Assembly (NCBI GenBank): GCA_950097015.1
Contig: CATNEN010000004.1
Span: 274,918-338,917 of the forward strand
Length of the DNA stretch: 64,000 nt
Direction of reading: 5' to 3'
DNA from: Macrostomum hystrix
Taxonomy: Eukaryota; Animalia; Platyhelminthes
The notes beneath the pieces are model-generated. The model did no database searches. It was not told the origin of the DNA and saw only the letters and a list, made by a program, of their open reading frames with translations. This document shows positions 2,691 through 33,031 of this stretch, one piece after another. Within the stretch, counting starts at the first letter, position 1, and each line of letters starts with the position of its first letter. The position numbers and the translations under genes are program-made.

Positions 2691-2741
2691 CTAGAGGTAC
2701 CCAGTTTGGCCAGAGGCCCTGGATGGGTCATCCAGCGCTGT

Positions 2742-2969
2742 TGCCCATTCTGTCCGGCTGCCCTAGGGTCAGCCTTGAACACTCGCGGGACGTGTACCCA
2801 TGGGTCAGCTGACGGGACAGCGTGGAGGGATCCCTGCACCCGGAGGTACAGGGCTCCTTCCTGCCAGGCCTGCTCAAAAAACGACTGCAGGTGTGAGGCA
2901 TCGCAGACCTTAGCCCGTAGGCCTGGTCTGACTCATACCACACAGGCATTGTGTCCCGCCGGTGCGAGC
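2742..2969 (-). ncRNA. HDV/CPEB3-like self-cleaving ribozyme at the 5' end of LINE A (predicted)
   Basis: P1 GCUCGC(2969-2964)/GCGAGU(2786-2781); P2 UGACCCAU/AUGGGCA; P3 GGG/CCC; L3 UACACGU; P1.1 AC/GU; P4 GGCUG..CAGCC; J4/2 CAGA with putative catalytic C at 2752; J1/2 about 155 nt. Confidence 0.75.
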
Positions 2970-3790
2970 CTCCCACTCTCCTACTCTCCCACTCTCTCTA
3001 CTCTCCCACTCTCCTACTCTCCTACTCTCTGTACTCTCCCACTCTCTCTACTCTGCCACTCTCCTACTCTCCTACTCTCTCTACTCTCCCACTCTCTCTA
3101 CTCTCCCACTCTCTCTACTCTCCCACTCTCTCTACTCTCCCACTCTCTCTACTCTCCCACTCTCTCTACTCTCCCACTCTCCTACTCCCCTACTCTCTCT
3201 ACTCTCCCACTCTCTCTACTCTCCCACTCTCACTACTCTCCCACTCTTTCTACTCTCCCACTCTCTCTACTCTCCCACTCTCACTACTCTCCCACTCTTT
3301 CTACTCTCCCACTCTCCTACTCCCCTACTCTCTCTACTCTCCCACTCTCTCTACTCTCCCACTCTCTCTACTCTCCCACTCTCTCTACTCTCCCACTCTC
3401 CTACTCCCCTACTCTCTCTACTCTCCCACTCTCTCTACTCTCCCACTCTCCTACTCCCCTACTCTCTCTACTCTCCCACTCTCTCTACTCTCCCACTCTC
3501 TCTACTCTCCCACTCTCTCTACTCTCCCACTCTCTCTACTCTCCCACTCTCTCTACTCTCCCACTCTCTCTACTCTCCCACTCTCTCTACTCTCCCACTC
3601 TCTCTACTCTCCCACTCTCTCTACTCTCCCACTCTCTCTACTCTCCCACTCTCTCTACTCTCCCACTCTCTCTACTCTCCCACTCTCTCTACTCTCCCAC
3701 TCTCCTACTCTCCCCATTCTACCCACACCCACTCTCCCCCTTCCCACTCTCTTACTTCCCCACACTACCAAACTCCCACACTCCCACTCT
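2970..3790. repeat. 17-bp pyrimidine-rich minisatellite (CTCTCTACTCTCCCACT)n
   Basis: Direct reading of the tandem units. The overlapping S/L/P/T-rich ORFs are repeat translations. Confidence 0.95.
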
Positions 3791-23825: not shown

Positions 23826-24478
23826 TCTGGTCACCCTAATATTCATATATAATTACATATTAACCGAAAATTACTGTGCCGATTCAGAGGGACAGATATG
23901 CGGACACTCAGAACTATGGACAATCTTGTCTGTCCACGCCCGTCTCGCAGGCCCAGGAACATCCTACCATCACGGGCCGTGGCTACTTTACTAGGCACTG
24001 TTTCCTCCGGGCGCGACCTTGCGAGTGAATTTTGCCTTTTTGCCTGTACGGCAACGAAGATGCTGAACAGTTTGTTTGTCCATGTATGCTCTTTTTTTCA
24101 ACAGAGACTGGCGATCAACGAGATTTGTCAGCCTCACAATCCTACGGTTTGTCCAGTTCCTTGGGGCAACAAAGACGACGAGCCACCGTTCGTCCCCACA
24201 GAAGACATCGGTGGACAAGCGGCCCCGTGCCATCGCCAATACACCTTTTTCCGTTCAATTTCAACAAAACTCGCATACAATTTCGGCAAGCCAAAAATCA
24301 AATTCGTCAGTTTATATTTAGCTTGACAAATCAACATTCAAATTCAGCAAACGCACATTCAGATTTAACTTGACTTAGCGGCAGGGAGCCTCCATGACGG
24401 ACGCAGCGAGGAGGCGGCTGATGCCGCCCATATCGCTAACCCCTGGCAGCCAGACAGCCTCCAGCGAGGCGGTGCCGC

Positions 24479-27400
24479 TCAGGGTGGTCCGTCGGTCGAT
24501 TCCGCCGCGCGATCTTCCTCGCCATAGGCTGGGAAGAAATCAGCTCGGCCGGTATCCCGGAGGAAGTGGGCGAGCTGTGGGATGTTCTCGGGCGAGCAGG
24601 CTTCGGCGAGAGTCGGTGCCGGCCCGAGATGTTTTAGCCTGGCCCGGGTGAAGGCCGGGCAGTGGCAGATGAAATGCTCTGCATTTTCGCGTCCGGAGCA
24701 GCAGAAGGGACACGTTTCCTCAGGCACGTGGCCTTGAAGGTAGCGGTGTCTGGTGAAGCAGCCATGTCCCGAAAGAGCCATAGTGACTGCTCTTAGGTCT
24801 CTGCGGTTAAGCCTGAGTAAGGCCTTACGCAGGTTACTAGAGGGGGTTGGCACCGCAGCCCTGGACTGGCGACAGTTCAGGGTGCTGGACCACCTCCTCC
24901 GGTGCTGGGTCTCCATCCAGCAGTTGATGCTGGAGTTGACAACTGAGATGGGGATCGGGGACTCCGGGCCCGGGCCCATCAGGGAGCTGGCTGCTCCAGC
25001 CTTAGCAAGCTGGTCCGCCATCTCATTCCCTGTGAACCCGGCATGCCCAGGGATCCACAGCAGCTCCACCTTGTTAGACTGCGCCAACCCGTTTAACTGG
25101 GTGTTGCAGTCCAAGGTGGTTCTGGAGCGAGAGGTGCAGCGGCTGAGGGCCTTGAGGGCTGCTTGACTGTCGGAGTGAAAAAAGATCCTCCGACCAGCCA
25201 GCTGCCTCTGGCGCATCTCAGCCGCACAGAAGCTGATGGCGAGCACTTCGTTTTGGAAAACGCTAGAGCTCTTGCCACAGTATTGGGAGTGGGTCCAGAG
25301 GACCTCACCACCCGAGGCGACGCACACTCCGAATCCCGATTTACCGTTCATCAGAGAGCCGTCAGTGTAACAGTGGACTGCCGGGTCATCCCAGCAGTCC
25401 TTAACCTCATTACGAGGGGAGATGCTGACTTTGTACCTGTGGCTCCGGAGTAAAGTGGCCGGGGCCCCGTCCGAAAGGATGGTGAGCCCTCCGCACTCGC
25501 CCAGAGTTTTCAGGCAGAGGTCAGAGTGAGGCAGAAGGGAGCGCTTCGAGAAGGCTCGCGAATTCTGGAAGGAGACACCCGCATCAAGAAGACGACGGGT
25601 GGACTTTGCTGCTTCCCCCTTGACGAAAATGTCAATGGGTGTAGCGTTGAGGAAAGCATTCATGCCTTCGAAGGGAGTGGAGGGTGGGGCGCCCAGCGTC
25701 ATACGACAGGCTCTGCCCTGCACACTATAAAGCGCCTCCAGGTTTTTCTGGATGCCCATGGCGCTGGCCCAGATGAGGCCAGCGTAAGCGACGGACGGTC
25801 TAATGATCGCCGTGTAAATCCACCAAAGGTTCTTGGGGGTTAGCCCCCAGGTGGTGCCCACGGCACGCCTGACTTGCGCCAGTATGGCCAGGGCCCTCTT
25901 GGCCTTTGTGGTGATGTGTGGGGTCCAGTTAAGCCTATGGTCTAGCACGAGACCAAGGCACCGGACCTGCTTTTCCATGGCAATATTCTTGCCATAGAGA
26001 GTCAGAGGCTTAATGGTCCAGAGCAGTTTGCTGGATAAACATAACCGCAACGGTCTTGGACTCAGAGAGTCGGAGCCCGCATTGGTCCTGCCCAGCGCAC
26101 CGCCCTGTTGATAAAGCCCTGGATGAGGTCTCTGGTGGTTTCCGCCGAGGGGCCCGCGCAGATGGCGGTCACATCGTCGGCATATCCCACCTTCAGGACT
26201 GGGTCTGGACGAGTGCTTTTCAGCAGCTCATCCATGACGAGATTCCACAGCAGTGGGGTGAGGACGCCGCCTTGGGGCCCTCCTTTTAGGACAGGTGCCG
26301 AGAGCAGCCTTCCTTCGAGGTGGGCCACCACGTGGCGATGCCGGATCATGTACATGACCCAGCGAACGAGGTGGGGGTGAGTGGCCCTGGAGACCAGGGC
26401 CTCCTCAAAAGCTTCGAAAACAACGTTATCGAAGGCCCCCTCAATGTCTAGGAAGACAGCCAGGGCAAAACCGCTGCCCAGCACTGCCTTCTCGAGAGTC
26501 TCCACGATGCAGTGGAGGGCGCTCTCCGTGGACCGGCCCGCCCGAAAGGCGTGCTGGTTTGGGGAGAGCGGGGCCCGCCCTAGCTCTACAGTAAGAAGGC
26601 GCCAAAGCACCAGTCTTTCCATGAGCTTGAGGCAGGTGGAAGTCAAACTTATCGGGCGATAGGATTTGACCGAGCGATAGTCGCCTTTGGCGGGCTTCGG
26701 GATGAAGACGACCCGGGCTTCGTGCCACAGCGCTGGTACATAGCCCAGCACGATGCAGGCCCGTAGAAGTCTGCAGAGGAGATGGAGGAAGCGGCCATTT
26801 TTGACCGCTTCATGCAAAAAGGCCGGATAAATACCATCTGGCCCAGGTGCTTTGAAAGGGTTGAATGACTTTGCCGCGCGAACGATGCGGTCATTCGTGA
26901 CGAGTGACTGAGCCAGGCCCTGACCTCCACGTGAGTGGTCGTCTGGGCCAAAGTGCGCCGGTACACTCGGGAAGAAATGCCCTAGCATAAGCTCGAGCGT
27001 TTCCTCCGGGCGCTCCGTGATCGAGCCGTCTGGCTTTTTGATCGATGAGAGCTTGGAGAAGCGGTCGTTGGTGAGCGCCTTTACCACGCGGGCCGTGGGC
27101 CGCGAGCCCTCAAGCCCTTCGCAGTATTGTCGCCACTTGTCCGCTTTTGCCCTTTTGACCCGGCCCTTAAACTCATGGATGGCGCGAGTATAGGCCTCTT
27201 TGTCATCAGGGTCGTGCGAGATTTTCAACCTCCTCTGGAGAGCCTTAGCTCGGCGTCTCAGGACTCCGAGCTCGGGGTTCCACCAGGGGGCCGATTTTTT
27301 GCCTTTGTAGGCTTTGAGCGGGCAAGCCATTTCGTAGGCCTCTGTGATGGCGCCGCCCAGCAGGGCAGCCACTCCATCTAGGTCCTGCGTGGTTGCCATG

Positions 27401-28186
27401 GCCATGGAGGGGTCGGAATCCCGAAGGCCCTCATGCAGCTTTTGGCTGAACACGGGCCAGTCGGTGTTTCTGACATTACGCCTCCAGATAGGCTTTTGCT
27501 TCTTATCGGGGGTACCGATGTTGAAGCGAATGAAGCGGTGGTCCGAGAGCGAGCTTTCGGTCTCCCACACCTCCCACCCCAGCACCTTTGGGAGGATGCC
27601 GGGTGAGGCCAGGGTGACGTCAAGCACCTCAGCCCACCGCCCATTGTCGAACGTGGGCGTGTTGCCCACATTGCAGAAGTTAAGAGGCGTGCCGCTAACG
27701 AAGGCCAGGAGCTCTTCGCCGCGGTCATTGATTTTTGAGCTACCCCAGTGGGTGTGATGCGAGTTTGCATCTCCCGCGAGGAGCAGCTCAAAATTTCGTG
27801 CCCTGGCGAAATCACAGAGGGCGACGAGGGTATCGCTGACCACGGGGGCGTCGCCTGCCAGGTAGGCGGATGCCACGAGGGTCAACTTGTTGGGCACAAT
27901 GTGTGCAGATTGGATGACGCAGATGTCCCCGTTAGAGAGATCGGGTCTCATCCACGCATTTAAGGCTTTTGCAGCATAGATCAGTGATCTAGGGCGGACA
28001 GAGTCTGCCATGCAGAAGCAGTCATAGCCAGCAGGAATGTTACTTGGCTTGTTTTTTGATAACCAGGGCTCCTGCACAAGTACAAGGCCCGGCATCGTGC
28101 GCTCTGTCGTGCGCATCAGATTGACTGATGCTGCCACGCAGTGCTGGGTGTTAACTTGCAAGACATGATATTCCGGGGATCATCAT
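24479..28186 (-). CDS. LINE B ORF2: endonuclease, reverse transcriptase, RNase H, C-terminal Cys/His motif (three +1 frameshifts)
   Basis: [86 protein letters not shown]. Single extra bases near 28163, 26085 and 26035. Confidence 0.93.
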
Positions 28187-28198
28187 GCAGGCAGAGGT

Positions 28199-29748
28199 CT
28201 ACTTGGAGGGGGACTCAGCCAGAAGGCGGTCCTCCTCCTCCGGGTCGATGTCGGTAGCCATGGGCTCCTCCGTGCCCCGGCCCCGAGCCAGAGGCGGGAA
28301 CTCGACGGGGTCAGCCGCCCAGTCCCCACCCCCGGCCCTGAGCCCAGGCCCAGAGTCACCCTCAACCGGTGCCGACACCGCACCCTGGGCCGTGGGAGGG
28401 GCGCTCGAAGGGCCCTGCATCGATGGAGCTGGGCACCTTAGAGGCCTCCCCCGTAGCCCTTGGTTGCGGCGCCTGCCCCGGTGGGCCAGCCGCGCATCTC
28501 AGCGCGCAGCTGGGCCATCCTGGCGGTTCGCACCACCTCGGAGGCCCGCTGGAGAAGGCCCCGGCGCTTTGTGATGCGCGCGGGGCGACGCTCAGAGCTG
28601 CCAGCGATGGCACGCTCTGGCCTTTTTTGGCGAGACGACTGGGCCCTGCCCCCAGTCCCAGCCTCGGGGTCCGAGGACCCTTCAGTGGCCGGTACGGTGG
28701 TGGGCCCGGTCTGACCTCGAGATTTATCTGCCTCGAAGGCGAAGATTTTGGTCTTCCACAGACCGATGCAGATGTTGGCGCCATCTGGGTAACGGCGTGT
28801 CCATTGCTCGGACAGGCCCAGAATGGCGGTAAATCCGGTGCCATCGGGGCGCAGGATCGTGCGGTGCACGATCAGGCCCGCTGTCGGCAGCTCCCGGTTC
28901 ATCGCGATGAGGCCCATGCGGAGGTCCTCAGCGCTGGTGACGACACTTTTCGCCGGGACGAAAATGCGGTGTCGCTTGGTCTTTGGTGGCTCGTTCTCCC
29001 GGAGGAAGTCGAGGCCAGCCGCCCAGCTCTGCGTGGGCAGCAACTCAAGGAGCCGCCGCCCTGATTCCGCGTCGCCGGGCCAGACGACGAAGCACGATTC
29101 CCTGGTAGCGCTTGCGCCGACCGCCAGGGGCTCGCCCTTCAGTTGGAGTTGCCACAGCATAGCATCTATGTTGCGGCAAATGTTGCTGAGCTGTTCGCTG
29201 CTCAGCCTTTTTCCGTCTCTGCCGGTGATGACAACGGCAGGTTGCCTACGTGCGATGGCGGCGTAGGTGGCATGTGTTCCCGGGCCCTGTCCGGTGGCGA
29301 CCCCACCCTCGGGATCAGCGTCGGCGGTGGGCACAGGGCCCTCTGCCTCCGCTTCTCCTTCAGGCCGAGCCGCCGTCCGGATGGGCGCCGGGACCTCCTT
29401 GGCCCGCGACCCTGGCCTCGGGGCGTCGAGGGCTCCGCCCCGTGCAGGAGCCTGGGCAGGAGGCGCAAGGCCCCCCGCCCCAGCCCCCGCCCTAGGCAGA
29501 GCCCCTTCGGCCCCTCTGGTCTGGGCCCGGTCCTCGGTCGATGGAGCCGGCTTGCCGTGGGCCATTAAGCGCCTACGACGCTTCGCCGCTCCAGAGGTTG
29601 AGGAGCGCTTAGCGCCCCGGTCGTCGCGCGAGTTGGGCAGCGCGGCATTTGTGGCGGTCGCGGGGCCAGCTAGCCCGGGCGCCGCAGCGTGTATGGCCTC
29701 GGGCACCATGGTGTCCTCGGCCGGAGCAGTTGGTAGGCTGGAAGCCAT
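28199..29748 (-). CDS. LINE B ORF1 (gag-like), frameshifted near 28450-28550
   Basis: First ATG at 29748. The core is homologous to LINE A ORF1. The C-terminus EEPMATDIDPEEEDRLLAESP (ORF 28199-28420) matches the LINE A end EEPMELGQNTGEDEESLLNNSP. Confidence 0.82.
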
Positions 29749-29982
29749 TTGAAAGCTGCAATGAGGAGAGGGGCTTCCTGTAGACACAGGCAGGAATAAC
29801 CCGCTCAGCCGCGATCCCAAAGCTGAGCGGGGGCAGCCAAAAAAGACAAGTTACAACCCGGGGTGGGATGCCAGGACCACCGGGAGGAACCGTAGGAGGC
29901 CAGACTACTCCCTGGTCAAGCGTCCATCAGCACGGTCAACACTGGGACATTAGAGGGCGCTATTTGGCCAGCGCCGAGGCCT

Positions 29983-30330
29983 GCGGACTGGCCGCATACC
30001 CTGTTAAGGTCAAAGGGTGACACCTTTCCCTCAGAGCCGAAGCCAGAGGTACCTGATCACGCACAGGTGCACGAACGCTGCGGACTGGCCGCATACCCTG
30101 TTAAGGTCAAAGGGTGACGCCTTTCCCTCAGAGCCGTAGCCAGAGGTACCTGATCACGCACAGGTGCACGAACGCTGCGGACTGGCCGCATACCCTGTTA
30201 AGGTCAAAGGGTGACACCTTTTCCTCAGAGCCGTAGCCAGAGGTACCTGAACACGCACAGGTGCACGAACGCTGCGGACTGGCCGCATACCCTGTTAAGG
30301 TCAAAGGGTGACACCTTTCCCTCCAACCGG
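29983..30330 (-). repeat. About 3.6 copies of the 97-bp monomer in the LINE B 5' UTR
   Basis: Units begin at 29983, 30080, 30177 and 30274; same monomer as at 2242-2690. Confidence 0.95.
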
Positions 30331-30382
30331 GGCTAGAGGTACCCAGTTAGGCCGGAGGCCCTGGATGGGTCGTCCAGCGCTG

Positions 30383-30612
30383 TTGCCCATTCTGTCCGGC
30401 TGCCCTAGGGTCAGCCTTGAACACTCGCGGGACGTGTACCCATGGGTCAGCTGACGGGACAACGTGGAGAGGATTCCTTCACCCGGAGGCACAGGTCTCC
30501 TTTCTGCCAAACCTGCTCAAAAAACGACTGCAGGTGTGAGGCATCGCAGACCTTAGCCCGTAGGCCTGGTCTGACTCATACCACACAGGCATTGTGTCCC
30601 GCCGGTGCGAGC
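30383..30612 (-). ncRNA. HDV/CPEB3-like self-cleaving ribozyme at the 5' end of LINE B (predicted)
   Basis: The core is identical to the copy at 2742-2807. G1 (30612) lies immediately next to the TSD. Putative catalytic C at 30393. Confidence 0.78.
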
Positions 30613-30879
30613 TTCAGATTTAACAAGCAACATTACAATTTCGGCAACTGGCATTCAATTTCATACCGTCGCACAAGCTATTGTACTGTCTATGGTGAAA
30701 AGGGGGTTGAAGCGTGTAGAAATCTCATTCGATTTCGGCATTTTGCATTCAATTTCAACATGTATATTTTAGGTAGAACACATAGCACATCAAACAGAAC
30801 GGAGCGGAAAGAACACACAACGAAAACGAACACATCTTTTGTTTGACCAAATGTAATTGAAATGTACGCGACAGTCAAA

Positions 30880-31215: not shown

Positions 31216-33031
31216 GCTCAAGTGTGTCTTTGAGAGTGTGGTCGTGTAGAAAGCATACGTATCAGAAAGTTGGCTTCTGTGGGCATTCTCTTGTATGGTC
31301 TGTACATGTTGTATGGATGTGATTGGGATATCTATGGTTGAAATTGAATTCAAGATGCCGAAATCGAATGAGAGTCCTACACGCTACAACCCCCTCTTAC
31401 CATAGACAGTACAATAGCTTTTGCTACGGTATGAAATTGAATGCCAGTTGCCGAAATTGTAATGTTGCTTGTTGAATCTGAATGTGCGTTTGCTGAATTT
31501 GAATGTTTATTTGTCAAGCTAAATATAAACTGACGAATTTGATTGTCAGCTTGCCGAATTTGAATGCGAGTTTTGTTGAAATTTAACGGAAAAAAGGTGT
31601 ACATGAGTTAGCAGAATGGGCGATCCTCGCCTCCCTGCTGTGTCCAAGGAACTCTGTAGGAACAAAGTCAAGTCAGTTGTGATGACATAATTTTTGTGCA
31701 TAATAAACTCTTGTATTTCGATCGGAAACGAAACGAACGGTGTTAGTACGAGCGTATTGTGGCGTAGGCAGAATATTTTTTGCTTTTTAAAAACTGTAAT
31801 ATAGTTTCGGAAATTCAGACAAATTACTTAGCTATTCGATCCGAGGATTTGCCTTGTCAAACTAAACTAAGCTTCAAAGCACATTATCAATTTCAAACAA
31901 AAATCCAACTTCTAGCTTAGTGAGTCTACGATTAAAGACAGATGAAATGGTTATACAAATAATTAGAAGCAGCGTCAAGGAAATCATATTAACTGATCGA
32001 CATTTAAAATAAGATTAGTTCAAATACCAAGTTTTTCTTTTCTCTGAAAATAAAAAAAACATATTCAAACAATCGCCTTGAAAATCCAGAACATGGGCTA
32101 AAATTTTCCGCTCTATCCGATGAAACAACTTCCAGAATTCCTAAACGTCAGCATCTTCGAGATATTCAACGATTCTCGTCGGACTGTCTGGTGGCTTCAA
32201 CCACCAATTTAGGCATATTTTTTCTGCTCACAAATTTTCATCATGTAATTACATGTCGGCTATTAATTGTTAATTTTTAATTTTTAATTTTTCGAACGCA
32301 TATGGATTTGCCATAGAGGTTACTTCAGAGCAATGTTAGTTATTCTTGTCACCAGGGTTTTCGACAAAAATTGCTGAATAAATCGATGAATGGCGGAAAA
32401 TGTTAATCTTTCACATTTGCAGTGCAGGTATTTGAAATACCCCGTGGTCCATTCACTGGGGGGGAGAATAGCCTGGACTTTCTACTGGGAAAAAATGTAT
32501 GAATATGTAGAGATAAAGACGGAATAAACTTGCAAAAAAACAAAAAATTAAGCACCTTATTAAAGGTTAAAACGGTTAGAAAAAATGTTAAAGAATGGTC
32601 CATATTGAGTAGTCGCTCTGGATTATAAAAAATGGTATCTGTTGGCCCATTCACACTGCCATCAAGCGAGGTCAGAATACACGTTGTACATTGTTTCTAT
32701 GACGCTTCAAAAAAATTTCTATACCAATTGCGAATCATTTGATGGCGGTGTGAACAAGCTTTTACGTTCGTAGAGCGCCGGATGATTTTGAACCTTGGTC
32801 ACTTTGTCACAATGAGGACATTATTGAAAATCGTTTCGATTTTTTCTAGATCTTTATCATAAAAACAGGGATTTGTTTTGTGAGCAAATGTCTATGCAGA
32901 TAGGCGTTTGTACTTAGTCTCAAATCTTTTAAAGGTAGGAAAGCATAGTTGGAGTACACAAGAAGCAAATTAGCAGGAACAAGCCTCCGAAATTTTGTAG
33001 TTTAATCCTTTAAAGCGTTAGAATGAAGCAT

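Follow-up and report, generated by a model that had tools for sequence, protein, structure and literature searches.

The first 230 nt of an APE-RT-RNase H LINE in Macrostomum hystrix most probably form an HDV-like self-cleaving ribozyme, for which we infer catalysis with a probability of about 80%. The candidate lies on the minus strand at 30383..30612 of the window (the whole 64,000-nt stretch of DNA that was analyzed), and its predicted cut is 5' of G30612, hereafter G1. A second copy of the candidate is present in the same window. The first-pass annotation had proposed that these elements are freed from read-through RNA by self-cleavage, and its proposal is supported by the fold, by the way G1 falls on the element boundary, and by conservation among replicating sublineages, with cleavage itself predicted from these features.

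The LINE and Its 5' Boundary

Copy 1 of the LINE occupies 24370..30612 on the minus strand (6243 bp) and is headed by the candidate ribozyme. Its ORF1, an open frame at about 28441-29850 with a first ATG at 29748 (minus strand), has no Pfam match. Its ORF2, on the same strand, encodes LINE machinery downstream of the ribozyme, with the domains Exo_endo_phos/Exo_endo_phos_2 and RVT_1 (APE and RT, in 26065-28179) and RNase_H (in 24482-26227); look-up of ORF2 in the ESM Atlas returned generic APE-RT clusters only. The reading frame of ORF2 shifts within the RT domain, where the frame carrying APE and RT stops at 26065 and that of RNase H opens at 26227. Copy 1 is therefore probably inactive, or else the assembly has an indel at 26065-26227.

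The boundary of the insertion is exact. The 12-bp target-site duplication TTCAGATTTAAC adjoins G1 directly on the 5' side (30613..30624) and is repeated on the 3' side (24358..24369). In addition, a paralogous unfilled site is present in inverted orientation at 31337..31601 (minus strand), only 0.7 kb away, where the sequences flanking the LINE join without interruption and have the 12 bp of the duplication as their overlap. The unfilled paralogue is 93% identical to the flanks (24240-24369 plus 30613-30759). Therefore, G1 is the first base of the insertion, without added nucleotides, as the first-pass annotation had placed it. The target of this LINE is a repeated sequence, and the nearby inverted paralogue is a natural empty-site control.

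The same terminus recurs across the genome. Searches of 220 Mb in 42 contigs, using BLAST and a core covariance model (P2, P3, and P4), identified at least 150 copies of the core, of which 93 have an identical 70-nt core. The covariance model uncovered no diverged relatives in this genome, with all 150 scored matches belonging to one near-identical family. Mapping of 5' junctions, a check that had been suggested along with the original proposal, gave a uniform result: all 53 distinct insertions that were read across the whole ribozyme start with GCTCGC at G1, and the sequences upstream are unrelated, showing that the LINE has inserted at many sites. Two other loci, L053 and L056, have a perfect core but are truncated at the 5' end inside J1/2, as is usual for LINEs; without the P1 5' strand, they could not cleave at G1.

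Taken alone, a precise 5' end fits a transcription start as well as a cleavage site. Many insect LINEs have internal promoters in their 5' UTR that initiate precisely, and the uniform end described here could likewise reflect initiation from such a promoter, with the HDV-like fold being fortuitous. We consider this explanation very improbable. Among the 53 insertions, the base at position -1 is T in 14, A in 13, G in 13, and C in 13; hence there is no conserved upstream base and none of the G excess expected from cap copying. The structure and its pattern of conservation, described below, also argue against a fortuitous fold and for the ribozyme.

Contigs assembled from public runs (Logan; kind of run unknown) confirm that different flanks lie past 30612, list no variants in the core, and are silent on RNA ends. 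One contig crosses the junction and fits DNA as well as uncleaved RNA. This is X1, a 168-nt contig from the run of a different organism (guessed to be RNA) that covers window positions 30532-30616, carries the 5' end of the ribozyme, and enters an unrelated flank a few bases past G1. The family, with the same terminus, therefore exists outside this assembly. X1 would be an uncleaved read-through transcript if its run is RNA.

Anatomy of the Candidate Ribozyme

The strands that follow are on the minus strand and their nucleotides are numbered from G1 (window position 30612). P1 pairs GCUCGC (30607..30612; nt 1-6) with GCGAGU (30423..30428; nt 185-190) to form 6 bp (GU, CG, UA, CG, GC, and CG), consisting of a wobble between G1 and U190 (U30423) and five Watson-Crick pairs. 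J1/2 is 157 nt in length (30450..30606; nt 7-163) and is organized as a 3-nt ACC linker, a 9-bp closing stem with one G.U pair (30595-30603 with 30453-30461; nt 10-18 with 152-160), a branched interior of 133 nt, and a 3-nt AGC linker. P2 has 7 bp and joins UGACCCAU (30442..30449; nt 164-171), in which A166 is bulged, to AUGGGCA (30384..30390; nt 223-229). P3 (30429..30441; nt 172-174 with 182-184) is a 3-bp GGG/CCC helix around the 7-nt L3, UACACGU (30432-30438; nt 175-181). P1.1 has 2 bp, C177-G191 and A176-U192, formed between A-C of L3 (30437-30436) and the G-U that follows P1 (30422-30421). The strand J1.1/4, UCAA (30417-30420; nt 193-196), precedes the P4 hairpin (30398..30416; nt 197-215), which has 5 bp, a bulged A, 2 bp, and a CUAG loop. 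Lastly, the 7-nt J4/2, GGACAGA (30391..30397; nt 216-222), contains C219-A-G-A, which fits C-N-R-A, and leads into AUGGGCA of P2.

Most of this anatomy had been described in the first-pass annotation. Each of its pairings for P1, P2, P3, L3, P1.1, and the UCAA strand is found where it was placed, and the 9-bp stem that closes J1/2 is verified, with the length of J1/2, given as roughly 155 nt, being exactly 157 nt. The P4 hairpin is present, but the 2-nt UA loop ascribed to it is impossible and the loop is CUAG. The CAGA assigned to J4/2 does fit C-N-R-A but is only the end of a longer J4/2, and its C is at 30394 instead of 30393. The cytosine at 30394 is the candidate catalytic one, the equivalent of C75.

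The order of strands is that of a nested double pseudoknot, and complementarity was verified for P1-5', P2-5', P3-5', L3, P3-3', P1-3', P1.1, P4, J4/2, and P2-3', in that order. Features of the HDV-like class are present: a 6-bp P1 opened by G.U, a 3-bp P3, a 7-nt L3 with U first and G sixth, and C-N-R-A in J4/2. In HDV, the U and G at these positions of L3 are U20 and G25. The candidate deviates from HDV in having A-U as the second pair of P1.1, where HDV has C-G, and in having a P1 of 6 rather than 7 bp. In large HDV-like ribozymes, P1 is normally 6 or 7 bp and P2 about 7 bp (PMC4908430). Self-scission in the HDV-like class depends on Mg2+ and yields 5'-OH and 2',3'-cyclic phosphate ends.

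From this anatomy, a mechanism can be proposed. The LINE would be transcribed within a longer, read-through RNA, and the nascent 5' region of the element would fold into the nested double pseudoknot, with P1, P1.1, and P4 stacked and P2 and P3 stacked. The folded J1/2 domain, its 9-bp stem connected by a 3-nt linker on each side, would keep P1 next to P2. Cleavage 5' of G30612 would be co-transcriptional, catalyzed by C30394 of J4/2 together with Mg2+ near the U...G pair of L3, and would leave an element RNA with a 5'-OH that starts at G1 regardless of the upstream sequence. Reverse transcription to the end of this RNA would regenerate the full ribozyme in each full-length new copy.

The Fold Exceeds Chance

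A descriptor of the core alone was used to estimate how often such a fold arises by chance. Following generic rules for HDV-like ribozymes, it requires three Watson-Crick pairs in P3; 7-8 nt in L3, with U first and G sixth; a terminal U on the P1 3' strand, which may be 6-7 nt long; two pairs in P1.1; at least 4 bp in the P4 stem; the C-N-R-A motif in J4/2; and, directly next to P3, at least 5 bp in P2. Across both strands of the window (128 kb), the only matches are the two copies of the candidate. Sixty dinucleotide-preserving shuffles of the window yielded five matches, corresponding to 0.083 per 128 kb or ~1 per 1.5 Mb of strand. No matches beyond this ribozyme family were found on either strand of 382 kb of other loci.

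Based on the shuffle rate, the chance that a core lies 300 nt or less from any one element terminus is ~2e-4. The extra demand, for a terminal hexamer that begins with G and forms pairs with the 6 nt following P3, contributes a factor of ~2e-3 or less. The joint chance of a full core with P1 on the terminal hexamer is thus ~4e-7 or less, which stays small even over many LINE families. The match exceeds chance, which counts against an internal promoter with a fortuitous fold.

The pseudoknotted fold is also energetically competitive. With P1, the closing stem, P3, and P4 enforced and the P2 strands left free, the nested fold has a predicted energy of -92.4 kcal/mol, versus -98.3 kcal/mol for the unconstrained minimum, in which the P1 5' strand is paired elsewhere. 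The deficit of ~6 kcal/mol precedes the contribution of the P2 duplex, which is about -6.4 kcal/mol.

Curated RNA families do not capture the candidate. A covariance-model search for HDV-like ribozymes had been put forward as a check; Rfam cmscan of the whole window at the gathering score returned no HDV-type family (HDV_ribozyme, CPEB3_ribozyme, drz-Agam, and others), and scans of 30200-30800 and of the core alone matched no ribozyme family at E up to 10. The sole match is to SECIS_4 on the other strand, which we attribute to chance. At the level of sequence, the candidate therefore falls outside every curated HDV-type family. The HDV-type families curated in Rfam are narrow. The missing match, along with a lack of covariation, is a point in favor of an internal promoter with a fortuitous fold. 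The HDV-like class has been found using structure descriptors (PMC6765202).

Replicating Lineages Preserve the Ribozyme Parts

Variation among the 53 insertions separates selection from decay. Variants shared by at least three copies were treated as fixed in replicating sublineages and rare variants as decay following insertion. P1, the closing stem, and the core (97 positions) have no shared variants and 7 rare variants. The J1/2 interior (133 positions) has 22 shared and 19 rare variants, and the next 100 nt downstream have 9 shared and 27 rare variants. In shared variants, the ribozyme parts are set apart both from the J1/2 interior (Fisher 3.5e-6) and from the 100 nt downstream (p = 0.003), in a sample that partly favors intact cores because half of the loci (L031-L060) were chosen for a perfect core; in the set picked by BLAST alone (L001-L030 plus copy 2), the counts of shared variants are 0 versus 11 (p about 0.002). 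In rare variants, no such difference separates the ribozyme parts from the J1/2 interior (p = 0.14). Lineages that were still copying thus never altered the ribozyme parts. Variants at the level of lineages avoid exactly the parts needed for a ribozyme, a point against an internal promoter with a fortuitous fold.

P1, P2, P3, P4, and P1.1 are invariant across copies, apart from single dead copies, and no compensatory changes were seen in the core among genomic copies. Covariation therefore neither supports nor contradicts the fold. In the J1/2 interior there is no double compensatory change, and shared variants are mostly at positions predicted to be unpaired.

This test reveals constraint, and constraint is not a demonstration of catalysis. 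The HDV-like fold could have been selected mainly for another role, with cleavage weak or absent. Such a role could be binding of an element protein, ribosome entry on uncapped RNA, or a promoter combined with a ribozyme as in L1Tc Pr77. Some features of the candidate are compatible with this, namely a P1.1 weakened by its A-U pair, a P1 of 6 bp, and a very large J1/2. There is also precedent, as the J1/2 region of R2 binds the R2 protein and the R2 ribozyme is thought to be IRES-like (PMC6765202). Nonetheless, the predicted catalytic features are all intact (the C of C-N-R-A, the U...G of L3, and G1.U), and the 5' ends of all 53 insertions fall at the predicted scissile bond. Additional functions, including any role in translation, would be expected to supplement cleavage and not replace it. 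We thus judge a fold maintained mainly for purposes other than cleavage to be unlikely, and self-cleavage remains the favored reading.

A 5' Module Shared by Divergent LINEs

The ribozyme of copy 2 is at 2741..2969 on the minus strand, with G1 at 2969. The first-pass annotation had reported it at 2742-2969 with an identical core; the 70-nt core (2741-2810) is indeed identical to that of copy 1, and the copy itself extends one base farther. A GAGAGT-like simple repeat is directly upstream of copy 2 at 2970-3060. Elsewhere in the window are two long satellite arrays, one from 7199 onward with a 16-bp unit (about 140 overlapping registers, 96-99%) and one from 41473 onward with a 23-bp unit in hundreds of copies, interrupted.

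Copy 2 belongs to a second LINE lineage, with an ORF1 at about 620-2107. The two lineages share a 640-bp 5' module, composed of ribozyme and monomers, that is 95% identical between copies (29971-30612 versus 2229-2969). Downstream of the module, copies 1 and 2 have no similarity in DNA, and the ORF1 proteins of their lineages are only 40% identical. That one module heads both lineages also speaks for the ribozyme. Of the 53 insertions, about 14 have the downstream sequence of copy 2 and most have that of copy 1; loci L018, L038, and L055 may represent a third lineage.

The monomers of the shared module are 3.5 tandem units of 97 nt with 97% matches (29981..30323, minus strand), which lie within the 5' UTR, roughly 60 nt downstream of the ribozyme. 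Monomers of the 97-nt type also occur at L061:1-190. Only one ORF1 homologue was found outside, P0001, with 59% identity, and similar monomers head its 5' UTR. A ribozyme is absent from the 1984-nt contig of P0001, which ends inside the 97-nt monomers. The monomers might be promoter or enhancer repeats, like the monomers of mouse L1. The possible promoter activity of these repeats in the 5' UTR is also a point for an internal start of transcription.

The difference between a module that is 95% identical and ORF1 proteins that are 40% identical points, from sequence comparison, to exchange of a 5' cassette between elements or to very strong constraint. A more far-reaching possibility is that ribozyme and 97-nt array together are a portable 5' cassette that has been swapped between distant LINE lineages, in which the branched J1/2 has a second job. 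That job would be, for example, binding of an element protein or serving as a platform for promoter activity or translation. We regard this extended scenario as doubtful, though worth stating. If it is true, the module would be comparable to Pr77 in having a dual function and would be built on a ribozyme with a large J1/2.

Comparison with Known Ribozymes

The core resembles that of a ribozyme found outside retrotransposons. The CPEB3 ribozyme of mammals is compact and intronic, has no J1/2 insert, and has a G-U dinucleotide after P1 with a weak P1.1. Its 7-nt L3 (UUCACGU) and that of the candidate (UACACGU) presumably share the form U-N-C-A-C-G-U. This resemblance, which the CPEB3 model of Rfam does not detect as a match, is one of core motif and not of family membership.

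Several non-LTR elements are established as having HDV-like ribozymes at their 5' ends: R2 (of insects, a planarian, and others), L1Tc, Baggins, and RTE (PMC3774820, PMC6765202, PMC3185411). No paper was found on ribozymes of this kind in Macrostomum, nor on flatworm LINEs of the present type. With cleavage predicted, the family described here would join, as a high-copy and apparently recent LINE, the elements whose RNA 5' end is set by HDV-like self-cleavage. Because the mechanism is already well established, the finding extends the known picture rather than changing it. Because one 5' module is shared by two divergent LINE lineages, it seems that elements can exchange ribozyme cassettes.

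Like R2, the LINE begins with an HDV-like ribozyme that has an enlarged J1/2; in R2, the ribozyme lies in the first ~184 nt and frees the RNA from its co-transcript (PMC6765202, PMC3774820). The two differ in that R2 inserts site-specifically in 28S rDNA, encodes a restriction-like endonuclease, and often cuts upstream in 28S, whereas the present LINE is of the APE-RT-RNase H type, inserts at many sites, and is predicted to cut at its own first base. In the latter respect it is like Baggins, RTE, and L1Tc, which are likewise dispersed non-LTR elements and are cut exactly at their 5' end (PMC3774820, PMC6765202, PMC3185411), but their ribozymes are compact (77 nt for L1TcRz) and the candidate is 230 nt with a large J1/2. 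The shared module is also like Pr77 in being a 5' hallmark common to related elements (PMC4035085).

In overall architecture, the candidate is like drz-Agam-2 of Anopheles gambiae, which combines an HDV-like core with a stably folded insert in J1/2 (its P1.2) and short linkers that keep P1 and P2 together (PMC4908430). Structured J1/2 domains activate large HDV-like ribozymes by a 'pinch' of P1 and P2, as described for drz-Agam-2-1 (PMC4908430). The likeness is structural, with no similarity detected by Rfam models. P2 has 7 bp with a bulge in the candidate and 12 bp in drz-Agam-2, and the J1/2 structure is branched and 133 nt in size as opposed to one long helix. The LINE of M. hystrix therefore offers a natural case of a very large, branched J1/2 with short linkers and a useful test of the 'pinch' model of activation.
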